Virus record (IMG/VR): IMGVR_UViG_3300020178_000002
Location: 248,001 to 312,000 of that record
DNA: 64,000 bases
Reading direction: 5' to 3' (one strand)
Every line of letters starts with the position of its first letter. Within the stretch, counting starts at the first letter, position 1. Positions 3 through 63,981 of the stretch are shown piece by piece. The notes beneath the pieces are model-generated. The model did no database searches. It was given only the letters and a program-made list of their open reading frames with translations, and had not been told where the DNA came from. The translations under genes were made by a program, and so were the position numbers.

Positions 3-2597
3 AAAAAGAACACAGGTGAAGGTGGTCTTGATACATGGTTTGCAGGGCATGGTGGTGGTAAACCTGATGAAAGAGCAACATGGGGTGATTGGGTTTCTAT
101 AACTCCTGTTAAGAAAACAATAACTAAAGAAGATGGATCTAAGAAGACATATGAACCAGGTGACATTGTTGGCCCATGTGGGATATCTAGTGACCCAGAG
201 TGGTCATCCATTACAGAGAATGGAAAAAAGCCCCTCAAATGTATGCCAAGAGAAAAAGCTCATGATATGGCAAAAAAAGACAGAGCAGAACTCGCTAAGA
301 ACAAGAAAAAACAAGAGAGTGGTGGAAAGAAGCCTACTAACACTCCTACCTTTTCTGAGGAAGCTAAAGAAGTTTTAGACAAGAAGTCTGCTCTAGGGAT
401 TACTAGAAACTCTAGGGCTGTATCGAAGCTGAAAAAAGCTATCTTACACCTTTTAGCTTTCTATGCAGAAGATCAAGACAAGAAGATTACAGAGTTCTTG
501 AGCCTTGTTTTGGATAAAGTCGAGTCTAGGCTTCAAAATCAGTTCAATATCAGAAGGTTTTCTTTAGAATCTGCTTCAATAAATAGGTATGACCCTTCTG
601 CAACTAACATTTCCCTTTACTATGCGATAAATGGGGGGAGTTATAGGGTAGACCTGAACATAGGGTATTCAAACCAATACTCTAGATTTAATAGCAATGT
701 TCCTTTGAGAAAGAGAATGGGTGTAGCTCTGTACTCCATAAAAAAGGTGGCAAGTAGTTCTATCTTAATCCCACCCCCACCCTCTGAAGAAGAACACCTC
801 CGAGAGCTTTCTGAAGTATCGTATCAGTATGAAAATAGATATAATGCTCCAGAGTTGCAGGACGCTTTAGATTCAAGTTCAGAACATCTTTTTTCAAATC
901 TCTTACTAGAACATGGTCATGTTGAGTCACCTGTTAACATCAAATCTATGATGGATGGGATTCTGGGAAGTATAGTTATTCATAAAAGCTTCTTCAATGT
1001 CTCAAGGCCTAATGTTCTAGCTAGCAAACATGGTATTCCATTTAAGTATGACTACTTAGAGTCTGCACAGACACCTAGCTACCCTAGTGGACACACAGCT
1101 CAGGCTTACTATGCTGCTCTCTTACTTGCTGATAAATACCCTCTCCTGAGAGAGGGTTTATTAAATATAGCCAGGATGGTTGAACAATCGAGAGTAGATA
1201 GAGGTGTCCATTACCCTTCAGACAACAAGGCAGGTAAACTACTCGCTACTGTTCTTTATGAGAATAAGAAGCTAGGAAAGAAAGCAGACTTCTTTAGAGA
1301 AGTATCTCCACCAGATTCTTTAACAAGTTTAAATCAAGGAAGTCATGGTAAGGATGAGAACCCCGATGGTGTAAATGACCACAGTTCTTTGCCTAATGGG
1401 GATTCAGCAAGGAATATAGGCAGACCTTCTCCAGATTCTCCTAATCTGAAGTATAAAGATCTTCACAATCAACCTAGACCTACAAATGTTATAGACAGAG
1501 GGTATGTGAATAACAGTGGTAGTGGTTCAGCGAGGGTCATACCTCAGTCTTTAAAACAAGCTGGTTCTCAACCTGCACAAGATTTAGCTGGTGTGAAGAC
1601 ATGGGTGACTAAGACCAGACAAGATCAAATAAATAATGACACTAACCCCGAAAAGACAAGAGCAGATTATGAAGACGGTAAGCCTCAGAGAGACAGAGTT
1701 CTACCTTTACCTAGTGGACACCCAGAGGGGAGAACGGAAGACAGGGCAGCACCGAAAGGATTTAATACTGTGCCCGATTCTAGTGGTCAGGGTGGACAGA
1801 ATAGACCACCGAAAGATCCAAGTGCATTAAAAGACCAACCAGAGGGTAAAGCACTACACGAAAGACCTCGATCTAGTGCTGTTCCAGGAGAGAACTATGG
1901 ACATCCTTATATAGATCAGTCTACTTCTACGGGTCTTAAACGCAGAATTGTGGGAAATACTGAATTCTGGGATGTTGAAGATGGTGAGGTTGTGGCTGGT
2001 CAGTCTAAGCGTAAGACCAACTATAGAATCAAACGCAGACTTAGGATGCGACCTAGTACAAAGTCTCTTCGCAAGAGAAGAACCAATGTACAACAAAGAA
2101 ATAGGCAACGGAAGCTATATAGAAAACGAATCAAGACAGACTCTAATTTTAGAAAGAACAGAAAAGACTATCGTAAGCAGTATTACAAGAAGCACAAAAA
2201 AAGCTCAGAAGGTGAAGTTCTTCCTTTTGAGACTCAAGGGCTAAAGAAAAGTAAGATGATTAAACAGATGCCTGCTCAAATAGATGAGATCTGGGATGTT
2301 GATGACAATGGTGAATTAATAAAAGTTGCTGTAAGGTCTTTGATGCCTCAAAAAAATAGACAGAAGAAGATGAAGGGTCAAGTCCGTATTGAATATGATA
2401 AGAAAAGAAGACGGATGTCCAAAGGTGAAAAGCACAAAGAGTCTCTCAGGGCTAAAAGAAGATATAATAGAAACCCCAATAGGGCTATAAAGTATCAACA
2501 AAACAGGAGAAAGAGGCCAAAGCCTTATAGTCGTAAGGAATTTGGTGGCCCTCGAACTAAAATCCAACAGAAAAAACAGAAAGAGAAAGATAAATGA
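3..2597 (+). CDS. 5'-truncated multi-domain protein: N-terminal W/C-containing module (DUF5872-like), PAP2/acid phosphatase domain, Pro/Gly-rich linker, two Arg/Lys-rich tracts
   Basis: The frame of ORF 243..2597 is open back to base 3 (KKNTGEGGLDTWFAGH...GPCG...PLKCMP). PAP2 motifs KxxFxxxRP, SYPSGH and SRVDRGVHYPSD are present. The DUF5872 resemblance is from memory only. Confidence 0.75.
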   Translation, partial: KKNTGEGGLDTWFAGHGGGKPDERATWGDWVSITPVKKTITKEDGSKKTYEPGDIVGPCGISSDPEWSSITENGKKPLKCMPREKAHDMAKKDRAELAKNKKKQESGGKKPTNTPTFSEEAKEVLDKKSALGITRNSRAVSKLKKAILHLLAFYAEDQDKKITEFLSLVLDKVESRLQNQFNIRRFSLESASINRYDPSATNISLYYAINGGSYRVDLNIGYSNQYSRFNSNVPLRKRMGVALYSIKKVASSSILIPPPPSEEEHLRELSEVSYQYENRYNAPELQDALDSSSEHLFSNLLLEHGHVESPVNIKSMMDGILGSIVIHKSFFNVSRPNVLASKHGIPFKYDYLESAQTPSYPSGHTAQAYYAALLLADKYPLLREGLLNIARMVEQSRVDRGVHYPSDNKAGKLLATVLYENKKLGKKADFFREVSPPDSLTSLNQGSHGKDENPDGVNDHSSLPNGDSARNIGRPSPDSPNLKYKDLHNQPRPTNVIDRGYVNNSGSGSARVIPQSLKQAGSQPAQDLAGVKTWVTKTRQDQINNDTNPEKTRADYEDGKPQRDRVLPLPSGHPEGRTEDRAAPKGFNTVPDSSGQGGQNRPPKDPSALKDQPEGKALHERPRSSAVPGENYGHPYIDQSTSTGLKRRIVGNTEFWDVEDGEVVAGQSKRKTNYRIKRRLRMRPSTKSLRKRRTNVQQRNRQRKLYRKRIKTDSNFRKNRKDYRKQYYKKHKKSSEGEVLPFETQGLKKSKMIKQMPAQIDEIWDVDDNGELIKVAVRSLMPQKNRQKKMKGQVRIEYDKKRRRMSKGEKHKESLRAKRRYNRNPNRAIKYQQNRRKRPKPYSRKEFGGPRTKIQQKKQKEKDK

Positions 2598-3229
2598 TTA
2601 TAGAAGCAAGTAATTTAGCAGTATTACAGTTTGTACTCTGCACCCTTAGAGCTGCTCACTGGTCTCATTGGACTAGCCATTGGCAAGTCAGAGGTGGTCA
2701 TTTTTATGGAGACCATGAAATGATGGATAGGATTTATAGTTCTTTAGTAGAAGAGATTGATCTTCTTGCAGAGAAGATTGCAGCTTCTGCTGGGTCAGAA
2801 GCATTAGATCCTGTTCCTCAAGCTCAACTTATGGCAAACAAGTTGCTTCCTATTGTTGAAATAAAGGGAGAAAAAGACCCTATAAAAAGGGCTTTGTTTG
2901 TAGAGGAGGCTTTGCAGTTCATATTCAAGCATTCTTATAACATCCTTAAGGAAAGAGATGCCTTGACTCTAGGTATGGATGATTTCCTCATGTCTATTGC
3001 AAGTGCTCACGAAACCAATCTTTATCTTTTGAGACAGAGATGTGATAGTAGACCTATGTCCCGTAAAGCCTTTAACAAATACAACCCCACAGAGCTTATC
3101 TTGCAGTTATATAGAGTCCTATACAAAAATGGTCTTACAGATACTGTTGAGTACTTAAATAAGCACAGAGTACCTAAGGTTGTAAATGATGCTTGGATAA
3201 ACAGGGGTAAACTCGAGCTTATCGACTAG
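2594..3229 (+). CDS. Dps/ferritin-like four-helix-bundle protein with C-terminal extension
   Basis: SHWQVRGGHFYGDHEMMDRIY...EEIDLLAEKI matches the Dps ferroxidase pattern HW-x2-G-x2-F-x3-H...D-x2-AE. Confidence 0.75.
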   Translation: MIIEASNLAVLQFVLCTLRAAHWSHWTSHWQVRGGHFYGDHEMMDRIYSSLVEEIDLLAEKIAASAGSEALDPVPQAQLMANKLLPIVEIKGEKDPIKRALFVEEALQFIFKHSYNILKERDALTLGMDDFLMSIASAHETNLYLLRQRCDSRPMSRKAFNKYNPTELILQLYRVLYKNGLTDTVEYLNKHRVPKVVNDAWINRGKLELID

Positions 3230-3251
3230 ATTCTATTGTTAAAAAAATAAT

Positions 3252-4720: not shown

Positions 4721-7700
4721 CTATTTTTTTCCGTACCTTCCGTTTATAGACCCTCTGAGATCATACCTAGATCTTTTAGGTGCTATTCTCTTTGAATCAG
4801 ATCCGCCTCTGCCTGTGTATCTACCACCTGTAGCAAAGCTTTTCCCACCAGCAAGAGGGTGAGATCCACCTCTTGAGCCTTGTGCGAAGTATCTGGTTTT
4901 ACCCATACTGTTTGAAGCTAACCAGATCATTCTAACAAGTGCATCAGACATATCGTCATGTTTCCCAGCAGTTTGCGGTGCTTCCACAGTAATAAGGTGT
5001 TTTGAATGCACTGTTTGCTGTAGCTCTAAAAGCTCTGCAATATAAGGTTCGTGACCATCTACATAAGGGTCTTTCTTGTTGTAGAGCTTTAGCTTCTTAT
5101 CCCACATCATGTCCTTAAAGTTTTGGAACATATTCGATGTGATTTGTTTAGTCATGTTGACAGAAGTCAGTTGTTTCAGCCCTCTCTTTTCGAGAGCTTG
5201 TTGAAAAGGAATCCCAGCCCATTGGTCAAAGATCCCTTCAGTGAAGAAGAACTTCTTAGAATACTCAAGAACCCAATCCGCAACATCATCAAACTCTAGT
5301 CTCTCTTTATCATGGTAGATGCCTTCACCAGCTTTTATTTGATCTACCAAGTCAAGAACTATCATATCGTCTTCAAGGTGTCCTATTGCTATTGCAGTAC
5401 CATCGCCAACCAAAGCTAAGTCGATTCCAACAAAGTGTGGCTTTCTAGCTGGTGCTGATCTCTTGGGAGATAGGCTTGGGTCTACACAAGCTAAAAGGTC
5501 TTCTTCTTTCTCAATCCAGCCTCTGGTTCTATCTGTAAACTCACCACCATACTCTGTAAAGAACACAGCAGCGTTTTTGAGGTAATGCTTTTCAAACTCT
5601 TGAGCAGGGACTGTGGGGTTTACTTCCCAAGTCGGTGCTTGTACAGCTAGGATATTATCAGCAGCCGCACCACCTCTCATACCTATTTGAAATAAGTTAT
5701 AAAATAGCCCTTGTCGGCCTAAAGGAGATGAAATAAGGATAACCCTACCCTCTACCTCTCCAATTGGCTTTGTGGGGTCTTCTGGGTCTTTAGCAGAATA
5801 TGCAGATGTCGAAGGTACGACAGCGTTATAAACTTCTTCTGCACCAGATTGACCTGTCTCTGTAAAGTGAGCAACCTCGTCAAGAATAACGCATATATTA
5901 CCAGCACCACGAAGACCTTTAGCGACACAAGACCTAAAGGTAACTTTCAGCGTTGCTTTTGCAGAGGGGTCTTCGATATACCTACCATATTTCTCTACAT
6001 CTGCTGGTGTCTGAAACCTTGCATATGAGAGAGTGTTATTTGCAGTGTAAGGGCCAAAAAATGCACAGTTTCGATAGTGTCCTGACACCTCTTGATAGAG
6101 AAGTCCAGCTTGGTCTTTATCGGTCGCTACTGATATAATCTGGATGTTATTTGAAGCAGGTAGGCCATAGAACTTTTGAGGGTTTTCTTTTTTAATAAGT
6201 TTATATGTCTCATAGGCAGCAATACAAGCAGAGATTGTTGTGTTGTGGTTCGTAAAGCCATTACCTACAAACATAGATCCATCTGGAACATTCAAGTCAA
6301 AGACATGGCTCTCAGATTCTTCAACTTTTCTAACTGGTTCAAATATGTAATCTTTATCTAGGATCTCATTTAGCTTAAGGATAGAAGATTCTGAAATCTT
6401 CGCTTCTTTTATGATACTTCTTACCTTTTCAAAGCTTGTGCTTTTCTGTCTTAAACCCAAGTCTTCATGGCTATTTAAGTAAGAGCTGATTCTAGGAGGT
6501 AGTCCTATTTCGCCACTCTTTGGGGTTGAGGTCATCCTTTTAGCTAGGGAGTCTAGCTTTTCTCTTTTCTCTTTTGAGATGAAGCCTATGTCCTTGTGGA
6601 AGATTCTGTATGAAGCCCATTTCTTTAGTCTGATTCTGTAGTAGGGCTTTCCATCTCTTATTGTTTCTTTTCGAGATGAGAACACTCCTAAGCTCAAGAG
6701 CAAGGTTTGAACCTGTTTACCTAGTAGTTCGCTTTTTGTTGTGAAAGAGACATCTCGTCTGTCTCTTGATACAGACCCATCTGTTTCAAAAAGACCTCTA
6801 ATAAAAGCACATTGAACATCTCTTGGTGATCTTAGTATAATGTCTGGTATGCATTTATCTTTATACTTTGCTTTAATCTTCCAGCCAAGATTGTGCAGGA
6901 ATTTTCTGAAGTTCTTGTCATAAACGACAATCTTACTACAGTTCTTATTTTTTTGAGGTATCTCAGCGACCTTTCCAAAAAGGGAAAACATGGTTAAGAT
7001 GAGGTTTTCTTTAAAAGAGTTATCTCCTACTGTCACAACAATACAGTTTTCTTCAGACCAAGATCCATCTCCAGCCAAGATACCTAACATCTCACCCCAA
7101 TCTTTTGTGAGATACTCTGGAAATCTTTTATTTGGGTTCAGGTCTTTAGTGTATTCATTTAGCTTTACATATTGGTCAGTGAATATACTTCTTTTGTGGT
7201 TCAGGCAGGTAATGTCTCCCTCTTTTAGGTTTTCAAGATATTTCCAAGAGATGTTTAAGTTCTTATCGAGGACTTTGATTCTATGGTTTCCAGTTCCTTC
7301 TAAAGTGTACCCTGATTCTGTTTCCAATTTGAAAGTAGGTTTTATACCACCATTGTAGAAGTAAGCTGCTCTTGCAGTTTTGCCACCTTCTTGTACAACC
7401 TTAACTGATATTTTTTGGTATTCAGGTGCATCAAGGGAAGAGTCTCCTAATGAATCTATACGAACCAAACCTTTATCTGTAGGTATCAGAGTATCTCCTG
7501 TAACGCATTTACCAGATCTTCGACCTATCGAGAGAATCATTTCCCTTCTTTGTTTTCCAGGTATGACCTCTCCTATATTGCATCTTCCCTCATCAAAAAG
7601 TTTTTTGAGGTAAGACTTTTCAGTGTGGGTTTCAACTTTGGTTCTAGTCCAATCAGAAATCTGGAAAGTTTCGACATCATCTAACTCTAAGCCATAGTGT

Positions 7701-7843
7701 GCTTTGAGTATAACTCTCTGTACAGGAAATAGGGTCATTTTTAGACCCCAAGAAGACTCTACAAACTCTATAATGTCTGCATCTTTTTCTGATTTTTTCC
7801 CAGCCCTAGCACTAGCACTTATAGCTACTGAGGATAAGCTCAT
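4721..7843 (-). CDS. terL: Terminase large subunit, intein-containing (about 618 aa after splicing)
   Basis: Walker A GRRSGK|T split by the intein, Walker B VILDEVAHF, ISSP coupling motif, nuclease motifs VGIDLA and HDDMSDA. Confidence 0.92.
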   Translation of the reverse strand: MSLSSVAISASARAGKKSEKDADIIEFVESSWGLKMTLFPVQRVILKAHYGLELDDVETFQISDWTRTKVETHTEKSYLKKLFDEGRCNIGEVIPGKQRREMILSIGRRSGKCVTGDTLIPTDKGLVRIDSLGDSSLDAPEYQKISVKVVQEGGKTARAAYFYNGGIKPTFKLETESGYTLEGTGNHRIKVLDKNLNISWKYLENLKEGDITCLNHKRSIFTDQYVKLNEYTKDLNPNKRFPEYLTKDWGEMLGILAGDGSWSEENCIVVTVGDNSFKENLILTMFSLFGKVAEIPQKNKNCSKIVVYDKNFRKFLHNLGWKIKAKYKDKCIPDIILRSPRDVQCAFIRGLFETDGSVSRDRRDVSFTTKSELLGKQVQTLLLSLGVFSSRKETIRDGKPYYRIRLKKWASYRIFHKDIGFISKEKREKLDSLAKRMTSTPKSGEIGLPPRISSYLNSHEDLGLRQKSTSFEKVRSIIKEAKISESSILKLNEILDKDYIFEPVRKVEESESHVFDLNVPDGSMFVGNGFTNHNTTISACIAAYETYKLIKKENPQKFYGLPASNNIQIISVATDKDQAGLLYQEVSGHYRNCAFFGPYTANNTLSYARFQTPADVEKYGRYIEDPSAKATLKVTFRSCVAKGLRGAGNICVILDEVAHFTETGQSGAEEVYNAVVPSTSAYSAKDPEDPTKPIGEVEGRVILISSPLGRQGLFYNLFQIGMRGGAAADNILAVQAPTWEVNPTVPAQEFEKHYLKNAAVFFTEYGGEFTDRTRGWIEKEEDLLACVDPSLSPKRSAPARKPHFVGIDLALVGDGTAIAIGHLEDDMIVLDLVDQIKAGEGIYHDKERLEFDDVADWVLEYSKKFFFTEGIFDQWAGIPFQQALEKRGLKQLTSVNMTKQITSNMFQNFKDMMWDKKLKLYNKKDPYVDGHEPYIAELLELQQTVHSKHLITVEAPQTAGKHDDMSDALVRMIWLASNSMGKTRYFAQGSRGGSHPLAGGKSFATGGRYTGRGGSDSKRIAPKRSRYDLRGSINGRYGKK
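6242..7507 (-). mobile_element. Intein (422 aa) with LAGLIDADG homing endonuclease
   Basis: Starts CVTGDTLI, ends VFDLNVPD...GNGFTNHN followed by T(+1); block B TGNHRI; LAGLIDADG helices MLGILAGDGS and AFIRGLFETDGS. Confidence 0.92.
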
Positions 7844-9190: not shown

Positions 9191-11542
9191 TTAAATCTCA
9201 AAGCCACCAAAAAGGATGCCACCGAGTTTTTCAGAGCTTGGCATATCTTCTTGTAATTCAATATTTTCTGATGCGGTTAGGTTGAACTCACCCTCATCAT
9301 AGTTATTAACAAACAGAGAAGCTGTCTTCTCACTGTCGCTTGCATTAGCTAACCTGATCATCTCTTTTTGGTAGGTTGCAGGGCTTTCTACTATCTCTGT
9401 CACAGATGCAATGATTTGTTTGTTGTACTTTTGACAAGAACCCCCTGTATTAAACACACAAGACCCACACTTAGCTGTTTTTAATAAAGTAGGTATCTGG
9501 TTTGCTCTATGAACCAAAGATCCTTTATCACAGCCCTCTGTTCCTTTTGACATATAAGCATCTGCATCTACATAGGCATGGCCAGAGAGTCCTTCGTGTG
9601 CTTCTCTAATAGAGGCAATCCTTGAGCTATATTCATTAAGTACATTCTGGTCAAATCTGGTTGCAAGAAGTATATCAAGCTCTTCACCTGCAGCACCTTC
9701 ACTGATCTTTTGCCTAACCCATGTAGCAACTTTCATTTCAGAAGCTGACATCTTGTTAGACTTCTTTTGGCCTAACACATGTGCTGTTTCCTCACCAACA
9801 TATTGAGTAGCGGTTGAGGGTCTTGAAGCAAGGTCAAAAGCTTTTCTAACAAAGTCATTAGGGTCTTTGATAGATTCAATCTTCTTATAGTTATCTTGAC
9901 TTAGCAAACCTGTTGAAAGAAGCTTTTCAACTTTAGAGTGTGCCTCTTTCCAAAGGTTAGCACTTGCTCTTTTCTCTCTGTCTGGCACAGAGTCCAAAGC
10001 TTTGCTTCTATCTTTAACCATTCGGTGTTCTGTTAAGTTGTACTCACCATAAGATGCAGTTTTACTTGGCTTCTTAATGTACTTAACTACTGAAGCAAGC
10101 TTTTCTTCTGGAGTATTCTTGCCCTTAACAACTTTCTCAACTTCTTCAAAAGAGACAAGCCCTGCTTTCACGAGCTTTGAAACTTTCAAGGCAGCTTGTA
10201 ACTCCCTATTTTGAAGTTCTCTGTCTTCTTTCTTTGGTATGAGGACATTGCTTTGAACCTGTCTCTTCTTCATGTTGTGGTAAGAAGCAGATTTACCTTG
10301 ACCCTCATATTCAGAAATTTTTGTAGGCTGACTTGCTACAATATAGAGTCTTTCGATTTTTTGAGATGCTGTTCTGTCAGAATCTACAATGGCTGAAACT
10401 TGTTCTTCGTCTAAGAAGTTCTGTGCAACAAGTTCATGTGCAATTCTTTCTAGCTTCTTCTCGATTTTTGTTTGTTCAACTTCTTCATAAGATGCGACAA
10501 ATATGTTTTCTTCTCTGGCATTCTTTAGTTCTTCTTGTGCTTGATCTAAAGAAATAAGGCTCGCTTGGTCTATTTGCTGAGGAAACCATGTTGCAGACTT
10601 TTCTTCTCTAGCTACACGACCCTCAATTAAGTCAATAAATGCACTCTGAAGCCTCTCTTTTGAATTTCCAGATGCTACCTTTACCCCATAAGATTCGAGC
10701 TTAGGAAGCAAGCTTTTAGCAGCTTTATTCCAAGGTACTTCTTTAACAACTTCCATGCCTAAGAATCTGTCAAAGGCACAGTCTTTGTTTTTAGGAATGA
10801 TGTACATAGAGGTAGCACAACGTTTATTGATGACTTCGTTCCATCTGCCATTGAACAAACCTGGGAAGTGTTCTTCTTTAATATAAACACGACCATGTAG
10901 CCCATATTCAGAAGCAAGCTTAGACTTAGTTCTTAAGACATCTTTGCCCTCTACTTCTGAGAGTAGGTTCTTCATAGAGTGACCATAAGCAAGCTTTCTG
11001 TGTAGCTTCTCTTGCTTTTGTCTATAGTCATCTCCAGGTAAAGAGCTTTGGTCTTTTCTGTAAGAGTTTTGGTAAGGGATGTTTTTTCTATTGCTATTAG
11101 GGATTATGTTTATCCCATCAGTAGAAGCAGAGCCCCAAGCGTCTTGTAGAGTCATCAGTTGGTTAGCTTCAGGGTTTCCTGACTTGCCCTCTTCCATATC
11201 TTTAAGAACTTCTTCGAGAGATCTAAGTCCATCTAAATCGGGTTCTGGTTGACTGGCTAACCAAGAGTGGTCAACTAAGTTGATATTTTGACCAGCTTCT
11301 CTTGTGATTTCTTCAATGTTCAAATCAGTATTTGTGTTTATACCTAAAGGAATATCAGAGAAAGAGGGGCTGTCATTGGGAATCATTCCTTCAGGTAGGC
11401 CAGAAAGTCCCTTTGCTTCTGGTAGCCTTGCACCATCTAAGACACCATCATTGTAGTCTGTGTCAAAGTGGAAGCCATCTAGCATATAGTTAGACCCATT
11501 GGTCATGGAGTATCCTCCATTTGGTAGCTTACTCTCACTCAT
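9191..11542 (-). CDS. Large hypothetical protein with three internal helical repeats and a Cys-rich C-terminal domain
   Basis: 783 aa; repeated unit ending (A/K)xPxKxxxY(xG)...H; KCGSCVFNTGGSCQKY. Confidence 0.6.
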   Translation of the reverse strand: MSESKLPNGGYSMTNGSNYMLDGFHFDTDYNDGVLDGARLPEAKGLSGLPEGMIPNDSPSFSDIPLGINTNTDLNIEEITREAGQNINLVDHSWLASQPEPDLDGLRSLEEVLKDMEEGKSGNPEANQLMTLQDAWGSASTDGINIIPNSNRKNIPYQNSYRKDQSSLPGDDYRQKQEKLHRKLAYGHSMKNLLSEVEGKDVLRTKSKLASEYGLHGRVYIKEEHFPGLFNGRWNEVINKRCATSMYIIPKNKDCAFDRFLGMEVVKEVPWNKAAKSLLPKLESYGVKVASGNSKERLQSAFIDLIEGRVAREEKSATWFPQQIDQASLISLDQAQEELKNAREENIFVASYEEVEQTKIEKKLERIAHELVAQNFLDEEQVSAIVDSDRTASQKIERLYIVASQPTKISEYEGQGKSASYHNMKKRQVQSNVLIPKKEDRELQNRELQAALKVSKLVKAGLVSFEEVEKVVKGKNTPEEKLASVVKYIKKPSKTASYGEYNLTEHRMVKDRSKALDSVPDREKRASANLWKEAHSKVEKLLSTGLLSQDNYKKIESIKDPNDFVRKAFDLASRPSTATQYVGEETAHVLGQKKSNKMSASEMKVATWVRQKISEGAAGEELDILLATRFDQNVLNEYSSRIASIREAHEGLSGHAYVDADAYMSKGTEGCDKGSLVHRANQIPTLLKTAKCGSCVFNTGGSCQKYNKQIIASVTEIVESPATYQKEMIRLANASDSEKTASLFVNNYDEGEFNLTASENIELQEDMPSSEKLGGILFGGFEI

Positions 11543-12162: not shown

Positions 12163-12175
12163 TATAAATAACTTA
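12163..12175 (-). promoter_or_regulatory. Putative late promoter motif TA(G/A)-N3-(A/T)TTTATA (loose consensus)
   Basis: TAAGTTATTTATA. Related elements occur at 13221(-), 14627(+), 15920(-), 30327(-), 37346(-), 44029(-), 58809(-) and 63181(+), each about 32-43 nt before a start codon. Confidence 0.55.
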
Positions 12176-15367: not shown

Positions 15368-15882
15368 ACCTTTAATGGGTTGCCATCATCATCAAAGAGC
15401 CTTTCTACATCATAAGTCCCATCTTCAGAAACCTTAACACTCCAAAGGTCTTTAGTAGACTTGTGTACTAAAGCGTTCTCTCCAGATGCAATGTGGCTCA
15501 TAAGAGATGGACCACTTAATATGATGAAGTGTTCATCTAGGTTGGAAACTTTCATACTTGCCAGCTTCAAGAAGTCAGCAGGTACATTATCTATTTTGTT
15601 TCTGCCATCAAATCTAACAAAGATTTCATTTCCTAGATGAGTAGTAGGTCCATTAACAGTTTCAACAGTGACGACTGTTCCTTTAGTACCCGAAGATGGG
15701 AGTTGACCAGGTATTACAATGCCATTGTTAGTGAAAGCAACTACTCTAGAACCCTCTTTAAAAGTTGCAGCTTCTTTCTTATTTTTCCTACCTACAAGAT
15801 CTATCATATTTGTAGATAGGATAGCATCTATCCCAGAGGTCTTTGAGTTTGAAGTAAATGATATATCATTATTGTCCCACAT
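15364..15882 (-). CDS. Hypothetical protein (SH3/KOW-like middle, KxA tags)
   Basis: Probable start MWDNND at 15882; late-type motif about 38 nt upstream. Confidence 0.55.
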   Translation of the reverse strand: MWDNNDISFTSNSKTSGIDAILSTNMIDLVGRKNKKEAATFKEGSRVVAFTNNGIVIPGQLPSSGTKGTVVTVETVNGPTTHLGNEIFVRFDGRNKIDNVPADFLKLASMKVSNLDEHFIILSGPSLMSHIASGENALVHKSTKDLWSVKVSEDGTYDVERLFDDDGNPLKV

Positions 15883-15932
15883 AGTTATCTCTCTTTCTCT
15901 TTGTTTAAGAGTAGTCAGAGATAAATAAATTA

Positions 15933-19345: not shown

Positions 19346-19752
19346 GAACCAAAGGTGCGGTTAAGCATAAGCTTAAGCAAGTTAAACATCGCCTATTACA
19401 AAAAGCTGTTCGAAACAACCTAAGTAAGAAGCCTTGCAACTGTACGCACTCTGGTTTAGTTAGAGGCTCTGCATCAGAACCTTTATTTCATGTATGCTTG
19501 TTAGACTCTGATAAGCCAAAGGAATGGGAAGGCACTGTATGTGACCCTTCTGTTCCTAACACTTGTCCTTTTTTCAAGCCTACTAGAACTAAGGAAGAAA
19601 TAGAGATAGAGTTTAACACTAATTTTGAAAAGCTAATATCAGAGAATGATATTGGCAAGATTGCATCTAAGTACCCAGATGTAGCAGCTTTATTGTGGGT
19701 TCTTTCAGAAGAACAAGAGGATAGTAGTGATGATAGAGATAGTGAGACTTAA
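19342..19752 (+). CDS. Hypothetical Cys-rich protein
   Basis: 136 aa; PCNCxH...C...C...CPFF. Confidence 0.55.
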   Translation: MRTKGAVKHKLKQVKHRLLQKAVRNNLSKKPCNCTHSGLVRGSASEPLFHVCLLDSDKPKEWEGTVCDPSVPNTCPFFKPTRTKEEIEIEFNTNFEKLISENDIGKIASKYPDVAALLWVLSEEQEDSSDDRDSET

Positions 19753-40807: not shown

Positions 40808-41860
40808 ATGAGAATTGAAACAGAGTCGAAGCTGGACTTCAAAGATGTATTGTTTAAGCCAAAGAGATCAACTCTGACCTCTCGAAAAGAAGTAGATCTA
40901 AATAGGGATTTCAAGTTCCCTCATAGTAATCGTGTCTGGAGTGGTGTTCCTATTGTAGCAGCCAACATGGACACTGTTGGAACTATTGAAGCAGGTAAGG
41001 TTCTTTCTCAGAACAATATGCTAACTTGTCTCCATAAACATTACACTGAAGATGAGTATGTAGACCTCTATAATTGGGTATATGCGAACCAAGGCTCTAC
41101 TTATGCTTCCTATTGGGCTTACTCTATGGGTATTTCAGATGAGGAGTTTGCTAGATTAGAATCAGTCCAGAAGAAAACTTCTGGTAAGATTACTACAATC
41201 TGTATTGATGTCGCTAATGGATATACTGAGAGGTTCATTAACTTTGTTTCTAAGGTTAGAAACAGATATCCAGAAGCGATTATTATTGCAGGTAATGTCG
41301 TGACTGCTGAAATAACAGAGCAGCTTATCCTAGCAGGTGCAGACATAGTAAAAGTTGGGATAGGGTCAGGGAGCGTTTGTACGACTCGTATTCAAGCTGG
41401 TGTAGGCTATCCTCAGTTGAGTGCAGTTATTGAGTGTGCAGATGCAGCACATGGTTTGAATGGTCGGATTATGTCTGATGGTGGTTGTACTTGTCCTGGA
41501 GATGTAGCTAAGGCATTTGGTGGTGGGGCTGACTTTGTAATGCTGGGTGGTATGCTTGCAGGTCATGTTGAGAACCTTAAGCTAGATGACCAAGGAAATG
41601 CTTTATTTTATGGTATGTCATCAGATACAGCTATGGACAAGTATCATGGTGGTGTTAACGAGTATCGCTCATCAGAGGGTAGGACAGTATCTCTTGACCA
41701 AAGAGGCAATATAAAAGACACCATTCAAGACATACTTGGTGGAGTTCGTTCAACTTGTACTTATATTGGTGCGAGTGAGCTTCGTGAGCTGAGTAAATGC
41801 ACGACTTTTATTCGTGTTTCTCAGCAGTACAACCCTGTGTATGAAAGCAAGACTGTTTAA
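40808..41860 (+). CDS. guaC: GMP reductase (E. coli GuaC-type)
   Basis: [24 protein letters not shown]-terminus, [31 protein letters not shown] and [14 protein letters not shown]; no CBS domains. Confidence 0.93.
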
Positions 41861-43047
41861 ACCTTAACAGGGTCTCGCTTATTCTTGTAATAAGCAGTTA
41901 TGATTTTAGCAGTGCCTGTATCCTTATCAAACTCAAAGGCTACAGTTAAGTTTTTGGTCATAGGGTCTGTCCACTCAGCTTGCATTCCATAATCTATAGC
42001 TGAGATTAAGTCTTTAGCTCTTAGGTTGTATTCATTCCTCTCGTAATACTTCTCAAGATTAAAGAAGAAAGATTTCAGTTTGTGTACTGAAATACCTCTC
42101 TGATCCATTCTGTATTGAGCATGTGAACTGATGCAGAATTGTTTAATCTTATTTAGACCACTTTTATTGCAATCTACATAGGTATAAACCTCTCTGGCTT
42201 CACTGTTAGGTATGTTCTGACCTTGTTCAAGCTTTTTGATGAGTCTTAGTTCAAGGTTGTGATCAGCGACATTTTTAATAATCCTGTCTCTGGTATGTTC
42301 TATCCCACCTGGTTTTCCTAAAGGGGGGACTAGATCAGCCTTTTTCAGAGTTTTCTTTAAATCTTGGATTTCTCTCTGGAGCGTTTTACTCAAATCCTTG
42401 ATCTCTTTCCTCGTTTTGTTCCCATCCTCCTCAATAGTTTCCTCTAATATGTAACTAGTTGAAAAAGAACCAAAGGCTTTTTTTTCTCTGCTAAGGGTTT
42501 TAATCTCTTGGTTGAGTTCGTTAAGCATCTTCGATGCAGTACGAATCTGAGAAGCTCTTTTACCTCTGCTGAAGAGTCTCTTTAAGAATCTGACCCCCTT
42601 GCCTACAAGGGAGTACTTCTCCTCGATTTTTTCTTTTAGGTCTTCAAGAACTGTTCCATACTCTTTGAGGTACTCAGGCTGACCCATTAGCTCACCTAAT
42701 TCAAAAGCAAGTTTTTCTAACTCTTTGTCTTTTTCTGCCTTAGAAATGTCTCTTTTCATTTCTTTTATCCTGAACTTACGCTCAATTTTTCGAGCTGCCT
42801 TGTCTTCTTTTTCTCTTTTAACTCCTTCAATGAACTTTCTTAGTCGGTAGTTATCTAATTTTTTTTGCTTAATGGTCGCTAAAAAGCCATCAAGTACCGA
42901 ACCATATTCTTCAACATACTCTGGTTGAGCCTGTAAGCCAACAACCTCTTTTTCTAGGTCATCTAGGTCTTTGTCATTTATTTTATCTCTAGATACACGC
43001 TTGCTGATGTCTTTTATAGCTTCTTCTCTTTCAAGTAAGGTCTGCAT
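41857..43047 (-). CDS. Modular protein: duplicated helical unit, [10 protein letters not shown] tag, C-terminal DUF4258-like putative RNase
   Basis: [15 protein letters not shown]...KIITAYY at the C-terminus; the tag module is shared with the adjacent gene. Confidence 0.55.
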
Positions 43048-47382: not shown

Positions 47383-47775
47383 ATGCCTGTTCGTACTATA
47401 GTAGTTATTTGCTTATCTTTATCTTATCTGATGTTATTTGGTTTCATTGCTAGAGAACCCCAAGAGAGGTTTGTTCTATATGCTGTGCCAGAGTCTAAAG
47501 GTTGTATTTACCCAATAAACGAGATAAAGGAGACCAAAGTAGAGCTAAGGCATGTCATTCCCTATACGAAGATACATACTTGTAAATATGATGATTCCAA
47601 AAGACTCATTAGTGTTAAGACATATAACTTTGAGATAGGCTATCAAATGAAAAAGCCCACCCATGAAATAATCTATCATTGGGTGGGCACTAGGTTGAGT
47701 AAGGTCTCTTTTCGAGAGGCTTCTCATGGTCAGGGCGAAGTTGATGTTAGAGTCCTTGAGTTTTCAAAGAAATAA
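47383..47775 (+). CDS. Hypothetical membrane-anchored protein
   Basis: N-terminal TM segment MPVRTIVVICLSLSYLMLFGFI. Confidence 0.5.
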   Translation: MPVRTIVVICLSLSYLMLFGFIAREPQERFVLYAVPESKGCIYPINEIKETKVELRHVIPYTKIHTCKYDDSKRLISVKTYNFEIGYQMKKPTHEIIYHWVGTRLSKVSFREASHGQGEVDVRVLEFSKK

Positions 47776-55593: not shown

Positions 55594-56132
55594 TAGAGAT
55601 TAAAATAGGTGATTGCACCGAAAGACTAAAAGATTTAGAGGACAACTCAGTTGATGCTGTTATATCAGACCCTCCTTATGGGCTTAAATTTATGTCTAAG
55701 GGCTGGGATGATATAGGTGATGGCAGCCAGCAAAGAGAATGGCACAGAAAGTGGCTTACAGAGGCATACAGAGTTCTTAAGCCTAATGGAGTTATTAAAG
55801 CTTTCTCTGGGTCGAGAACTTTCCACCATCTGATAGCAATGATGGAAGAGATAGGGTTTGAAGACTTAAAAGTGGAGTCTTGGAGTTATGGTTCAGGTTT
55901 TCCTAAGTCTCACAATGTGAGCAAAGCGATAGATAAGTTAGGTGGTCGTCAATATAAGGCAATACCTGCTTCTGGTGTAGGGTTTATGAACTCAGATAAA
56001 GAGAACTGGAATGCTTGTCACAACCAACTCATTCCTGTCTCAGAAGAAACAGAAGAAGCTAAAGTTTGGAATGGTTGGGGTACGGCTCTTAAACCTTCAT
56101 GGGAGCCTGTCTGTGTTGGAGTTAAGAAATGA
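55590..56132 (+). CDS. DNA N4/N6 methyltransferase N-terminal (DPPY catalytic) subunit
   Basis: GDC...VDAVISDPPYG, RVLKP, WSYGSGFPKS and GWGTALKPSWEP; no SAM-binding motif I. Confidence 0.85.
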   Translation: MIEIKIGDCTERLKDLEDNSVDAVISDPPYGLKFMSKGWDDIGDGSQQREWHRKWLTEAYRVLKPNGVIKAFSGSRTFHHLIAMMEEIGFEDLKVESWSYGSGFPKSHNVSKAIDKLGGRQYKAIPASGVGFMNSDKENWNACHNQLIPVSEETEEAKVWNGWGTALKPSWEPVCVGVKK

Positions 56133-56734
56133 TTATTACAATATTAAGAAAGCCCCTAGAAGGGAGCGTAGCAGATAATGTGCTGAAACATGGATGTGGT
56201 GCTTTGAACATAGATGCCACTAGGATTGGTTTAGAGACTATGGTTTCTAGGTCTATGGGTAGTCTAGGGGTTATGCACGATGATAATTGGGAATCTAAAC
56301 CTATTGAAGCTAAAGAAGCCACAGGCAGGTGGCCTGCTAACTTTATCCTCATGCATAAAGAGGGTTGTGAGTTAAAAGGCTCTAAAAAAATTAAAGAGGG
56401 CAAAGCTAATAAAGATAAGGGTGGCTCATTTAGAGAAGTGGGTCTTTATGAAGATGGGTTGAAGACTAGAGCTGTAGACCATTTTCAAGGAGAAGAAGAG
56501 ATAGAAGATTGGGCTTGTGTAAAGGATTGTCCTATTAGGAAACTAGACCTGCAAAGTGGTCAAGTCAAAGGTTGGTCGAGTCAAAACCATAATACTTTTA
56601 ATCCATATCAAGGAAACTCGTTCCACAACTCGTCAACCCAAAGACAAGGATATAAAGAGGGGTATAACGATGATGGAGGGGCTTCTCGGTTCTTCAAGCA
56701 ATTTAAGAAAGGTAATGAAAAATGGAAGATATGA
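56129..56734 (+). CDS. DNA methyltransferase middle subunit, copy 3
   Basis: Same conserved blocks; lies in colinear position between the N and C subunits. Confidence 0.75.
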   Translation: MIITILRKPLEGSVADNVLKHGCGALNIDATRIGLETMVSRSMGSLGVMHDDNWESKPIEAKEATGRWPANFILMHKEGCELKGSKKIKEGKANKDKGGSFREVGLYEDGLKTRAVDHFQGEEEIEDWACVKDCPIRKLDLQSGQVKGWSSQNHNTFNPYQGNSFHNSSTQRQGYKEGYNDDGGASRFFKQFKKGNEKWKI

Positions 56735-57495
56735 TTGAGTATTTTAAAGTAATGATAACCCCACCTGTAGAAGAGCCTATTATCTTAGTAGGTAAGCCCT
56801 CTGAGATTGATTATACCAGCTTCATGGCTTTAGAGGGGGCTTCCATCGTTCCCATATATAACCCATCTGTACATGGGATCATTTTACTTGGAGAACCCAC
56901 AGAGGAAGAATCGAGTTTAATCAATGAGATTCTACTTCCAGGTGCTCATGTTATTCTTATCCCAGAAGATATTGGATATAAGGGTGTTATCTCCCTTGAA
57001 GACAAGGGTGGTTTAGAAGTTAGAGATGCCATTTTTGTAGCAGACGAGAACTCAGAGTTCTGCTATACTTCTAAAGCAAGTAGAGGTGAGCGAGAAGCAG
57101 GTCTTTCTAACTTCGATGAGAAAGAGGGTCATGGTACATTTAGGGCAACTAGAGATCAAGCTATGCTAACAGGTTCTGGTAATGTTAGGGACAACAAGCG
57201 TAAGAATATCCATCCTACTGTTAAGCCAATAGAGATAATGGAATGGTGTGCTAGAGATATAGAACCTAGCTCTACTGTTGTAGACCCTTTTATGGGGTCT
57301 GGAACAACAGGTATCGCTATGTCTAAACTACACCATGACTTTGTAGGGATAGAGCTTAATCCTGAATATGCTAAAATATGTGAGGCGAGGATGAAGTATT
57401 GGAAACCTGTGGACACAAAGATTATTTCAGAGAACCCTGTCGAAGAAGAAGACCAACAGGTCTTCACAGGGCAAGTTTCTCTATTTGACTTTTAG
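56722..57495 (+). CDS. DNA methyltransferase C-terminal (SAM-binding) subunit
   Basis: FCYTSKASxxERxxGL, NIHPTVKP, VVDPFMGSGTTG and FVGIELNPEY. Confidence 0.85.
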   Translation: MEDMIEYFKVMITPPVEEPIILVGKPSEIDYTSFMALEGASIVPIYNPSVHGIILLGEPTEEESSLINEILLPGAHVILIPEDIGYKGVISLEDKGGLEVRDAIFVADENSEFCYTSKASRGEREAGLSNFDEKEGHGTFRATRDQAMLTGSGNVRDNKRKNIHPTVKPIEIMEWCARDIEPSSTVVDPFMGSGTTGIAMSKLHHDFVGIELNPEYAKICEARMKYWKPVDTKIISENPVEEEDQQVFTGQVSLFDF

Positions 57496-58769
57496 TAGAG
57501 GTTACGCTCAAAACGTGCAGCTACTCTTTCTGCTAGCATTTCTTCTTGAGATGCTTTGCGAAGCAGGAGCTTCTTCACAGATCGACCAAGACTCATATCC
57601 ATCTTTGTGGCTCTGTCGGTCTTTATTCCTCTTAGGTTAACCTTTGTGAGGTCAACACCTGTAAGGTCAGCACCATGTAGAGTAGCACCTGTAAGGTCAG
57701 CACCAGAAAGGTCTACATTTCTAAGATCAGTTCCTGTCAGATCAGCATCTTTTAGAGTAGCACCTTTTAAAGATTTTGCCTTTGAAAGGTCAGCATACTC
57801 TAGGCTAGCACCAGAAAGGTCAGCACCAGAAAGATCAGATCTTTCAAAGTCAGCACCAGAAAGGTCAGCTCCTTTTAAAGATGTTCCTGAGAATACAACT
57901 TCTGTAAAGTCACAATTAGAGAGATTAGCTCTGTCAAGAACAGCAGCACTAAAGTCTGACCCTGTAAAGTCTACACCAATAGCTTTGCAACCAGAAAAAT
58001 CAGCACCATTGAACTTGGTGTTCTTTACATCAGAAGCATCAGCAAATTTCCCTCCCACATACTTAATGCCTGCAAGATTGCATCTTGTAAAGGTTGTTCC
58101 TTCTAGACCATCTTCGTCAGTAATGGTGATGCCTTTTAAGTGGGTTGAAATTAGAGTAGAGTCTTTAAAAGAAGCTATTTCATCTACTCCTGTAAATTTA
58201 ACTCCTGTTAAAATGTTGTCTTGGAACTCTACACCTAAGAGATTAGCACTTGTAAAGTCTGTGGCAGTTATACCATCTGCGTTTGTAAAATCAGCACCGA
58301 TTAAAGTAGCTTTTGTAAAATCTGTTCCAGTTAAGCAACTTAGTTGTAAGTTAGCACCTGTTAGGTTAGCACCTTTAAAGTCACTACCTTTTAGATTTGC
58401 ACCTTCAAAATCAGCTCTGAGTAGTTTAAACCCAGCAAAGTTTGATAGCTCAATCTCGGATTCTTGGAAATTTGTGTGGCTCAGATCATTTTTCGGAATA
58501 CCAAGGCTAGTAAAGTCTGTCTGGTTGAAGTTTATTTCAGAAAGATCTTTATTCTTCAGTACTCCAGCCACAGATTTAATGTCGTCAGGATAGCTGTTTA
58601 AGTATTCTTTGACTTTACCGCCTTCGAGAGCTTTTTGATAAGCTTCATCTTTTTCTCGGAATTCTTTTAGCTCTTTGCCTTGAAGAGCTGGTTCAGCAGC
58701 ATACATTCTCTCCATATATGCTTTTCTTTTCATTCTCATACGAGCTTCGTAATATGATCTTCTTCTCAT
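57492..58769 (-). CDS. Pentapeptide-repeat protein with basic terminal tags
   Basis: Long ADLSG/ANLTG runs; N-terminus KRKAY, C-terminus RKASQEEMLAERVAARF. Confidence 0.9.
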   Translation of the reverse strand: MRRRSYYEARMRMKRKAYMERMYAAEPALQGKELKEFREKDEAYQKALEGGKVKEYLNSYPDDIKSVAGVLKNKDLSEINFNQTDFTSLGIPKNDLSHTNFQESEIELSNFAGFKLLRADFEGANLKGSDFKGANLTGANLQLSCLTGTDFTKATLIGADFTNADGITATDFTSANLLGVEFQDNILTGVKFTGVDEIASFKDSTLISTHLKGITITDEDGLEGTTFTRCNLAGIKYVGGKFADASDVKNTKFNGADFSGCKAIGVDFTGSDFSAAVLDRANLSNCDFTEVVFSGTSLKGADLSGADFERSDLSGADLSGASLEYADLSKAKSLKGATLKDADLTGTDLRNVDLSGADLTGATLHGADLTGVDLTKVNLRGIKTDRATKMDMSLGRSVKKLLLRKASQEEMLAERVAARFERNLY

Positions 58770-58869
58770 TGGTTTACCCTTTTCAGTAAATGTACAGCAA
58801 AGTAGTTTTATAAATGATCTACAAAAAAGATTTTGATAATAGGATTACTAACAGTCTTATGGAGAAGCT

Positions 58870-62850: not shown

Positions 62851-63183
62851 ATGGGATTAGATCAAACAGCTTTCATTCGTAAAGAAGGCGAAAAAGACAC
62901 TACTATAATGACTTGGAGGAAACACGCTAACCTTGAGGGCTGGATGCATGAGTTGTATCGAGACAAAGGTAACGAGGGTGTTTTTAATCAAGAAGAAGTA
63001 TCTTTAACAAAAGAAGACTTAACCCGACTCATGGAAGAGAACAACGAAGGCTTAGATGAAGCCTGTGGCTTCTTTTGGGGTGTTTCTGATGAAGAAGATA
63101 AGATAAACACAACCTTATTCATTATCCAAGCTCTTGAAGCCCTTGAAAAGGGGTATGAGGTGATCTACACATCTTGGTGGTAG
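62851..63183 (+). CDS. Phage-type hypothetical protein
   Basis: MGLD...WRKHANLEGWM...GFFWG...YTSWW pattern recalled from phages. Confidence 0.7.
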   Translation: MGLDQTAFIRKEGEKDTTIMTWRKHANLEGWMHELYRDKGNEGVFNQEEVSLTKEDLTRLMEENNEGLDEACGFFWGVSDEEDKINTTLFIIQALEALEKGYEVIYTSWW

Positions 63184-63225
63184 TTTATTTATAGGTCACT
63201 CTATAGAAAAGCGAAGGAGATATGA

Positions 63226-63981
63226 ATGTCTAAAATAAAACAACTTGAAATGAGAATTGCCAGACTAGAGAAACAATCTGCAATGACTATGGAAAACAAA
63301 AACAAGATACTAGGTAAGGGTTGTTATGTAAGCCTTAGCAAAGGTGGTAACATCAAACTAGTAGAGCAGTTTCCAAAAATAAAAAGAGGTATGACTCTCA
63401 GGGTAACTGAGTGGAATCGTCTTACTTATCTGTGGAGGCTTGATAATTTTCCAGAGTTGAAATCACAAAACCTCTTTGACAATGATCTAAGGCGAAAAAT
63501 TAGATATGCTGACTATGATCGAGCTAAGAAGATTATTCAATCTAAGATTGATGAAGTCAAAAAAGAGACTTACAACAATCGAGTTAGGCATCTGAAGAAA
63601 GATTTAAAAAATCTTGGAGGAAACCCATACCCATCCAAGCTCTTTAAGGTTTTGGAAAAAAATACCAAAGCACATGAAGAAGTTAAGAAAGCTATTGAGG
63701 TAGAGCCTTATCACTATGAAGACATAGAGGCTAGAGGTAAAGACTTCTCTATAGAAGTAAGATGGGATTACTCTAAGATAGAAGCAGATGGCAGTTATAA
63801 AGACCCTTATGAGGGAATGAGTACTTTCTACACTACAAAGACAAGAGCAAGTGCTAGGAATCTATGGTATCTGGTGAGCAGCATGGGTCATGACATAGAA
63901 GATTATACTTTAGAGGAGTTCCTTGCCTTAGCAAAGAGTAAGAGAATATCTTTAAGGTATGTTCCTAGTATTTGGAGATAG
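63226..63981 (+). CDS. Hypothetical protein with N-terminal LEMRIARLEKQSA tag
   Basis: 251 aa; AAGGAG RBS; late-type motif at 63181. Confidence 0.65.
   Translation: MSKIKQLEMRIARLEKQSAMTMENKNKILGKGCYVSLSKGGNIKLVEQFPKIKRGMTLRVTEWNRLTYLWRLDNFPELKSQNLFDNDLRRKIRYADYDRAKKIIQSKIDEVKKETYNNRVRHLKKDLKNLGGNPYPSKLFKVLEKNTKAHEEVKKAIEVEPYHYEDIEARGKDFSIEVRWDYSKIEADGSYKDPYEGMSTFYTTKTRASARNLWYLVSSMGHDIEDYTLEEFLALAKSKRISLRYVPSIWR

Follow-up and report, generated by a model that had tools for sequence, protein, structure and literature searches.

Enrichment of [K/R]-x-A-S and shared terminal peptides in a phage G-like jumbo phage: a putative head-maturation protease site with the geometry of herpesvirus assemblin sites

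In herpesviruses, the assemblin protease (family S21) cuts between Ala and Ser at a release (R) site directly after its own protease domain and at a maturation (M) site a short fixed distance from the end of the scaffold, 25 residues in herpes simplex virus 1 (HSV-1). In phage T4, a leader of ~10 residues, the capsid targeting sequence, is found at the N-terminus of unrelated proteins (IPI-III, Alt) and is removed by the prohead protease gp21. Encapsulins take up diverse cargo, including ferritin-like proteins, by means of short C-terminal tails that dock inside an HK97-fold shell. The T4- and phiKZ-type prohead proteases cut after Glu, and in the giant phages phiKZ, 201phi2-1 and SPN3US a single protease (gp175, gp245) processes numerous head and ejection proteins at a short motif, which is often present several times in one propeptide (PMC10052503). 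The present work concerns a stretch of 64,000 nucleotides (the window), bases 248,001-312,000 of the complete 312,136-bp phage record IMGVR_UViG_3300020178_000002 in IMG/VR, which has direct terminal repeats. A preliminary description of the window had read K/R-x-A junctions and short helices on unrelated proteins as an address-and-cleave code of head assembly, with cleavage after Ala. The analysis reported here points to a stricter motif, [K/R]-x-A-S, as the probable recognition site of a head-maturation protease, with terminal peptides that would address proteins to the procapsid.

The source is a complete 312-kb jumbo phage of a Bacillus-phage-G-like lineage, uncultured. Its major capsid protein (MCP) is 89% identical to that of the uncultured record LR745208.1, 47% to that of Tunturiibacter phage Tunturi_5, 38% to that of Bacillus phage G and 29% to those of cluster C mycobacteriophages, and the MCP and protease families are common to this phage, phage G, Tunturi_5 and LR745208. 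A near-identity DNA search of the phage collection gave no match. Simple longest open reading frame (ORF) calls, comprising 339 proteins, served as the gene set throughout, and ORFs are named below by their lower coordinate, in the window unless the genome is stated.

All peptide strings quoted in the preliminary description were present in the ORFs named, but K/R-x-A proved too loose to act as a code. With expected counts taken from within-protein shuffles, K/R-x-A was found 796 times genome-wide against 699 expected (1.14-fold), and in the window K/R-x-A followed by any residue other than Ser was not enriched (120 observed, 119 expected). The signal lies in [K/R]-x-A-S, for which 131 sites were observed genome-wide against 57.8 expected (z 10) and 30 in the window against 10.8 (z 5.8); when a 783-aa protein with multiple sites and one paralog were removed, 19 sites remained in the window against 9.9 expected (p 0.0025). 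The system had been called window-wide, and the window is indeed enriched, but the motif is enriched across the genome and the key evidence lies outside the window.

Shuffling in blocks of 12 residues gave the same enrichment (z 9.9), which rules out local composition as the cause of the excess, and 95 sites against 48.7 expected (z 6.6) were left after paralogs had been collapsed. Eight permutations of the motif with the same composition were not enriched (z -2.6 to 3.8), nor were variants with Thr, Gly or Ala in place of Ser, with Gly in place of Ala, or with an aliphatic first residue ([ILV]-x-A-S, 115 against 108 expected, z 0.8). In a position-by-position scan, enrichment was confined to Lys (z 7.7) or Arg (z 7.5), Ala (z 11) and Ser (z 11), the x position favouring Thr, Val, Leu or Ile. 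When all 8000 gapped words of the form a-x-b-c were ranked, R.AS was fourth and K.AS seventh, the first place being taken by A.LE, which derives from the leader described below. The sites are concentrated towards protein ends, with 33 in the last 30 residues against 6.1 expected (z 11) and 15 in the first 30 against 5.7. In 29 proteins a site lies no more than 34 residues from the C-terminus and is followed by a short, mostly amphipathic tail of the type K-x-A|S-x-YP...LE or SQEEMLAERVAARFERNLY. Genome-wide, ~50 otherwise unrelated proteins are marked by the motif and by shared end peptides.

The head module is located at 173.9-181.4 kb of the genome, with genes for a protease, an acidic scaffold, a decoration-like protein and the MCP following one another in this order at 176.6-181.4 kb. 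A prohead protease, as implied by the preliminary description, was found with PHROGs next to the scaffold and the MCP (292 aa, phrog_2522, E 8.5e-51). This head-maturation protease (genome ORF 176592-178133, 513 aa, phrog_18299, E 1.6e-16), whose true start is probably Met52, contains five [K/R]-x-A-S sites and is homologous to the annotated proteases gp331 of Tunturi_5 and gp19 of phage G; similarity to proteases of Erwinia and Pseudomonas jumbo phages was weak (tblastn). Pfam models for S77 (PF03420), S78, S21 and HK97 capsid proteins found no match in the genome, the head genes being identified by PHROGs, and a PDB sequence search with the protease profile returned low-complexity noise and no protease.

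The sites in the protease flank its catalytic domain. From 1,470 metagenomic matches, including Tara Oceans, an alignment of 111 sequences was built from the protease itself and 110 of the listed homologues (48-95% identical). In 100 of the 111, a [K/R]-x-A-S at position 25 immediately precedes the protease domain, and in ~98 a site is found directly after the last conserved protease block, sometimes twice, in a linker that varies in both sequence and length. In the AlphaFold2 model both flanking sites fall in segments (residues 1-31 and 269-317) with a predicted local distance difference test (pLDDT) score below 50, on either side of the folded domain. When residues 33-265 of the model were searched with VIA-align, the best match was T4 gp21 (Z 7.7, 130 residues, root-mean-square deviation 3.0), followed by 34 herpesvirus protease entries (Z 5.1-6.9), with unrelated folds at 4.6 or lower. 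As judged by this model, the protease has the herpesvirus/T4 gp21 protease fold, a seven-stranded beta-barrel common to S21, S77 and S78. An alignment of 50 protease sequences contains the invariant residues H58, H130, S137, S181, H207, H224, H232 and S247, among which the catalytic Ser and His may be sought. Several of the metagenomic protease homologues also contain inteins.

The scaffold is very acidic (555 aa) and carries six [K/R]-x-A-S sites. Its homologues provide 85 distinct C-terminal tails, every one of which carries a site at 21-24 residues from the end. Sites fall in three aligned columns, filled in 76, 44 and 82 of the 85, and there are 2-14 sites per scaffold. As a separate observation, EF-hand models (PF13405, PF13202, PF00036) score the long Asp/Met/Glu-rich repeats of the scaffold (genome 178152-179819) as calcium-binding motifs in many of its homologues. 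The bracketing of the head-maturation protease by [K/R]-x-A-S, and the placement of a site ~22 residues from the end of the scaffold, make a cut site of the herpesvirus kind, used in head assembly, the most probable role of the motif. The earlier proposal of an address peptide with cleavage after Ala in head assembly gains indirect support from this arrangement, which recurs in ~100 homologues, from the occurrence of the motif in phage G, Tunturi_5 and LR745208, and from the common leader.

The RIARLE helix noted in the preliminary description is real. Fourteen exact copies were found genome-wide against none expected, always near the N-terminus, and an iterated hidden Markov model (HMM) recovered 28 proteins starting with I-x-x-LE-x-R(I/V)A-x-LEK-x-(A/S), in every case at the N-terminus or at a plausible alternative N-terminus. 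Beyond the leader, seven of these proteins form one paralog family, in which the leader co-occurs with C-terminal K-x-AS tails, and the other 21 are singletons with no detectable similarity to one another. The few homologues of the window copy, ORF 63226 (75-85% identity), keep the leader and vary in the length of the junction. The recognisable leader-bearing proteins include a pentapeptide-repeat protein and a JmjC/cupin enzyme, most of the others having no annotation. Synonymous codon positions differ freely among the leaders, so it is the peptide, and not a DNA element, that is conserved; a DNA-level cause, such as a repeat or recombination site, was rejected on this ground. A second helix, 'xVAxR(Y/F)', did not hold up as a separate motif: with six occurrences against 1.2 expected it is too rare, and the instances are variants of the leader and tail helices.

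Leader genes lie beside or inside the head module, at 146-163 kb and, in the case of genome ORFs 183199 and 183903, directly after the MCP gene, and the scaffold itself has a leader-like helix, EEKVARIERLANAL. After RLE, Lys or Arg is the next residue in 52 of 55 junctions, with Ala or Ser two positions later in 50. A degenerate DNA pattern for I..LE.RIARLEK detected ~84 IMG/VR loci, with 2-7 copies on each of several large contigs (107-376 kb). Their consensus, MRRSASEIIxxLExRIARLEKx[AS][SAT], shows that words resembling K/R-x-A-S often stand on either side of the helix.

In the window (Table 1), the 783-aa protein encoded by 9191 is a candidate for a multiply processed internal head or ejection protein. 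Its LR745208 orthologue also has multiple [K/R]-x-A-S sites, one of which aligns with KVAS at aa 288. Neither Pfam nor PHROGs gave a match to the 9191 protein, and a search of the ESM Atlas gave no usable fold or relative (model pLDDT 0.42). The possibility that it is the portal was rejected, the portal being encoded elsewhere in the genome. About half of the examples quoted in the preliminary description are instances of the stricter motif, namely RKAS in 57492, the KRAS/RTAS pairs in 41857 and 43060, KLAS in 15364, and KVAS, KTAS and KRAS among the nine in 9191. The remainder (RKAF, KKAF, KKADL, KRKAY, KEAA, VKTAG and KKVAQ) are not.

Sites near the C-terminus occur in the products of 19342, 22899, 37402, 43060, 47332 and 57492, with the sites of the tail-fibre-like 22899 and of the amidohydrolase 37402 being possible background. 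The neighbouring genes 41857 and 43060 have their common block through duplication of a module, and in 41857 the pair lies in the N-terminal half, well upstream of the nuclease-toxin-like DUF4258 domain. The K-x-AS-x-YP type of tail found in 19342 also ends the seven-member leader-bearing family; in the LR745208 orthologue of 19342 the YP tail is kept and KIAS is replaced by EIAI, which makes this KIAS weaker evidence. The KVAS upstream of the PAP2 phosphatase domain is a possible site that, standing alone, could be due to chance, and the KLAS of 15364 is probably background. The ferritin/Dps-like protein of 2594, which had been put forward as cargo, falls outside the system on sequence grounds, having neither a [K/R]-x-A-S nor the leader, and the single RQAS of the PIN-PhoH fusion, located inside the PIN domain, is probably a chance occurrence.

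Table 1. Positions of tagged proteins, motifs and associated genes (window coordinates unless another record or the genome is named)
Feature	Position	Strand	Details
Leader MSKIKQLEMRIARLEKQSA of ORF 63226-63981 (251 aa)	63226..63294	+	HMM E 1.9e-11; sole window copy of the 28
783-aa protein	9191..11542	-	Nine [K/R]-x-A-S: nt 10910-10921, 10670-10681, 10364-10375, 10283-10294, 10091-10102, 10052-10063, 9962-9973, 9611-9622, 9317-9328
Pentapeptide-repeat protein, 311 aa	43060..43995	-	PF00805, E 3.7e-38; C-terminal KRAS (nt 43135-43146) and RTAS (nt 43117-43128), 25 and 19 residues from the end
396-aa protein	41857..43047	-	N-terminal half paralogous to C-terminal module of 43060; KRAS/RTAS pair at nt 42550-42561 and 42532-42543 (aa 163-172); C-terminal DUF4258, aa 306-386 (PF14076, 24.5 bits, slightly below the cut-off of 25)
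Pentapeptide-repeat protein, 425 aa	57492..58769	-	PF00805, E 1e-59; RKAS (nt 57549-57560) 19 residues from the C-terminus, then tail SQEEMLAERVAARFERNLY
C-terminal KIAS and 'SKYPDVAALLWVL' tail of ORF 19342-19752	19657..19752	+	
REAS of ORF 47332-47775 (147 aa, no annotation)	47713..47724	+	17 residues from the C-terminus; CTTTATAG upstream at 47288-47295
KVAS, then SSILIPPPP, upstream of PAP2 phosphatase domain	744..755	+	ORF begins before the window and ends at 2597
KLAS in ORF 15364-15936	15556..15567	-	Internal, 64 residues from the end; not conserved in LR745208
Ferritin/Dps-like ORF	2594..3229	+	RKAF cited earlier
PIN-PhoH fusion	13298-14629	+	phrog_2765, E 2.4e-88
TATTTATA	12163..12170	-	40 nt upstream of ORF 11539-12123; heads operon 11539 > 9191 > ... 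> TerL
TATTTATA	44029-44036	-	34 nt upstream of 43060
ATTTATA	58809-58815	-	40 nt upstream of 57492
Word similar to TATTTATA	13221-13228	-	
Word similar to TATTTATA	63186-63193	+	
Word similar to TATTTATA	30329-30335	-	Fibre gene 23249-30283
Large terminase, TerL	4721-7843	-	1040 aa; intein with LAGLIDADG homing-endonuclease domain, aa 134-534
Portal	Genome ORF 243860-245527		
Leader genes of LR745208.1 (examples)	398171-398575; 351838-352536; 389893-390948	-; +; -	
Leader genes of phage G, NC_023719.1 (examples)	16055-16369; 28218-28733; 73330-73689		

The tagged genes also share an upstream signal. The word TATTTATA, together with its near variants, is the most enriched upstream 7/8-mer, and 40 of 61 matches resembling it lie 30-49 nt upstream of a start codon. 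Tagged genes are found in operons headed by TATTTATA more often than others (35 of 50 against 125 of 289; odds ratio 3.1, p 6e-4). Among the genes of these operons are those for the protease, scaffold, MCP and TerL as well as fibre gene 23249, whereas fibre gene 30340 and the portal gene lie outside them. From these associated genes we infer that the word is a late promoter. A late promoter shared with the fibre genes had been suggested before; as a motif association this holds for all the genes named, which lie in operons headed by such a word, but not for the second fibre gene, 30340. After ATTTATA, the upstream word with the strongest enrichment is GATAATA, which may mark another promoter class.

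The motif is also placed in a similar manner in the relatives. The scaffold of LR745208 has sites that align with those of the present phage. The sites of Tunturi_5 include one at 20 residues from the end of the protease, one at 16 from that of the scaffold, and five in an annotated 'DNA ejection protein'; phage G has two beyond its protease domain and one near either end of its portal. The relatives also have [K/R]-x-A-S in large proteins next to the terminase. Genome-wide enrichment in the three is much lower (z 2.4, 2.6 and 3.0, against 9-10 here) and the C-terminal bias of sites is weak or absent.

The RIARLE leader was not found in LR745208 by a local HMM search and is counted as absent from the nearest relatives, of which LR745208 and phage G have leaders of their own. 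In LR745208, seven proteins of different lengths begin with ~30 residues of the form M(T)TLRSKLIRLAHxNPALRPxLLPLLKEA(G/A/M), and one of their genes sits between the scaffold and decoration genes; this leader is unrelated in sequence to RIARLEK and ends in K-E-A, like the commonest junction in the present phage. About 10 phage G proteins begin with a leader MKRLIKK(S/A), in one of them MKRLIKKAS, which ends in K-K-S or K-K-A, and one of the genes is located between those for the portal and the protease. The phage G peptide is itself a possible short propeptide, in a cultured phage for which virion proteomics are available, with a particle-proteome table that contains many non-structural proteins.

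As compared with the described systems, the nearest precedent for an Ala|Ser cut is herpesvirus assemblin, and not T4 or phiKZ, which the preliminary description had cited as parallels for an address-and-cleave code and which both cut after Glu. The predicted scissile pair is the same as in assemblin, the site after the protease domain corresponds to the R site and that 21-24 residues from the scaffold end to the M site; in addition, the protease has a long C-terminal extension of its own and a fold matching the herpesvirus entries. However, P3 is Lys or Arg here and Val, Leu or Ile in assemblin, the scaffold is a separate gene and not an in-frame nested product, no sequence similarity is detectable, and the motif, known here from sequence alone, is spread over ~50 other proteins. 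With T4 the phage has in common a short N-terminal leader on unrelated proteins, expression tied to the structural genes, and gp21 as the best structural match. The T4 leader is cut after Glu (L/I-x-E), whereas the leader found here is helical, 20-25 residues long and has a K-x-A/S junction, and 28 leader carriers and 29 C-terminal tails contrast with a handful of tagged proteins in T4. The phiKZ-type phages are also giant phages with many proteins bearing a short protease motif, but theirs is S/A/G-x-E, cut after Glu, and in SPN3US the propeptides are N-terminal except in protease self-cleavage, in contrast to the strong C-terminal bias seen here. Encapsulin cargo-loading peptides resemble the C-terminal tails in being short and carried by diverse proteins, but they remain uncleaved and have another consensus; no encapsulin-type tag was seen in this phage, and the ferritin-like protein of the window is untagged.

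If the motif is a processing site, the protease would recognise [K/R]-x-A-S and cut between Ala and Ser, freeing itself at the sites on both sides of its catalytic domain and clipping from the scaffold the last ~22 residues, presumably a shell-binding tail. In ~50 other proteins the same motif would join the body to a terminal peptide, either the N-terminal amphipathic leader or a C-terminal helical tail starting right after K-x-A|S. The role proposed for these peptides is to dock their proteins in the procapsid, after which they would be cut off. The cargo, which includes pentapeptide-repeat proteins, an enzyme of the JmjC type, a protein with a DUF4258 domain and many unknowns, would then persist as internal head proteins or be ejected.

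Several observations weigh against this interpretation. Chance alone would account for about 58 of the 131 sites, and hence single sites cannot be called individually, examples being those in the amidohydrolase 37402, the adenylosuccinate lyase 38351, the PIN-PhoH fusion 13298 and the tail-fibre-like 22899; some sites are also not conserved in LR745208. A helicase-like protein (genome ORF 201998-205123, 1041 aa, phrog_1967) has six [K/R]-x-A-S, one of them 14 residues from its end, and is either a packaged enzyme or a warning that multi-site proteins need not be head proteins. An exact [K/R]-x-A-S stands at the leader junction in 7 of the 55 cases, the usual form being K-x-A-G or K-x-S-S/A, so that the leader may escape cutting or be cut under looser rules. 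No [K/R]-x-A-S is present in either the MCP or the portal here, the structural Z scores are modest, and the sequence relatives of the protease include phiKZ-type enzymes, which cut after Glu (PMC10052503). Co-folding of the protease domain with the C-terminal tail of 57492 gave a score of 0.00, which is evidence neither way. The statistics, positions and conservation of the motif, the fold and family of the protease and the association with the promoter-like word are established here, whereas cleavage itself, the exact bond and packaging into the head are all inferred.

It is hardly credible that the pattern as a whole is a product of chance, with short motifs arising from Lys/Ala/Ser-rich composition and no system behind them. 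The near-random frequency of K/R-x-A, its lack of enrichment in the window without Ser, and the sizeable number of [K/R]-x-A-S expected anyway are in keeping with such an origin, and for the loose pattern and isolated single sites it stands. For [K/R]-x-A-S and the leader it is refuted by the enrichment under both whole-protein and block shuffles compared with the permutations, by the 14 copies of RIARLE, and by the conservation of positions in ~100 protease and 85 scaffold homologues. Duplication of genes and shuffling of modules within the phage, with peptides shared in the absence of a common tag function, is improbable as the general explanation, although it evidently operates in the module common to 41857 and 43060 and in the family of seven leader proteins, which also share the C-terminal K-x-AS-x-YP tail, and it would suit a YP tail kept in LR745208 without K-x-AS. 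The excess nevertheless survives the collapse of paralogs, 21 leader proteins are unrelated beyond the leader, the divergence of synonymous codons places the leader peptide under selection, and the motif recurs in the variable linkers of distant protease homologues.

Basophilic kinases classically recognise a Ser with a basic residue at -3. A modification site for such a Ser kinase, in place of a protease site, would also accommodate the sites in the helicase-like protein and in helices of the C-terminal domain of the protease, but this too is quite improbable: Ala is strictly required at -1, Thr does not substitute for Ser, the sites bracket the protease domain in disordered linkers and keep a fixed distance from the scaffold end in the manner of herpesvirus release and maturation sites, and the C-terminal bias is strong. 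No kinase turned up, no search having been aimed at kinases. It is unlikely, though far from fanciful, that the motif is a protease site of the head core only and that the leader and tails direct proteins elsewhere (tail, membrane, replication compartment or chaperone) or form coiled-coil oligomers. The heptad-like I/L pattern of the leader resembles generic coiled coils, its junction departs from strict K-x-A-S, and its receptor and its role in packaging are hypothetical. Against this, leader genes lie beside or inside the head module and share the promoter-like word with head genes, some genes for the different leaders of the relatives likewise lie in head modules, the paralog family pairs the leader with C-terminal K-x-AS tails, and the scaffold bears a leader-like helix. 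Processing at [K/R]-x-A-S with terminal address peptides is the reading that we favour.

Other features of the window were noted. The LR745208 orthologue of TerL (639 aa) has no intein. Two adjacent ORFs of 2344 and 2321 aa at 23249-37305 (-) are the fibre genes of the preliminary description, and the small ORFs after them have laminin-G/ConA-like (22145), PA14 (21552) and tail-fibre-tip-like (22899) domains. Nucleotide-metabolism genes at 37402-41860 and 45514-46638 (+) encode an amidohydrolase, adenylosuccinate lyase, adenylosuccinate synthetase, IMP dehydrogenase/GMP reductase and an OMP decarboxylase-phosphoribosyltransferase fusion. Proteins of ~180-340 aa that form a multi-copy family are encoded at 53097-57495 (+), and also at genome 75088, 75888, 95712 and 246902; nearly all members match a single 533-aa LR745208 protein (281945-283546).

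The literature searched contains no report of a K/R-x-A|S rule in phage G or in its relatives, the 2020 phage G capsid paper being outside that search. If the proposed site is correct, the cleavage rule of the head protease of a very widespread giant-phage clade would have been obtained from sequence, and mature ends and the sets of internal or ejected proteins could be read directly in hundreds of uncultured genomes. The prediction can be tested in two cultured relatives, phage G and Tunturi_5. A phage protease would then use the Ala|Ser bond and the site geometry of herpesvirus assemblin, which would strengthen the picture of a shared ancestry of capsid assembly. The ~50 candidate packaged proteins, mostly of unknown function, would be good candidates for early host-takeover or anti-defence factors, and the short peptides could serve to bring foreign proteins into capsids of large size.

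More tentatively, and with the balance somewhat against it, a large and mostly uncultured clade of giant phages may possess a modular capsid cargo code, in which lineage-specific, interchangeable address helices (RIARLEK here, TLRSKLIRLAH...LLKEA in LR745208, MKRLIKK in phage G) are joined to cargo by basic-x-Ala|Ser and read by an assemblin-fold protease. The clade comprises over 1,400 metagenomic protease homologues, with phage G as a cultured outlier. In that event, ~15% of the proteins of this phage would enter the head as cargo, undergo trimming and presumably be injected, among them DNA mimics of the pentapeptide-repeat type, an enzyme of the JmjC type and a nuclease-like domain. Such a set of tagged cargo would far exceed any other known from a virus, and would offer a ready-made packaging tag.

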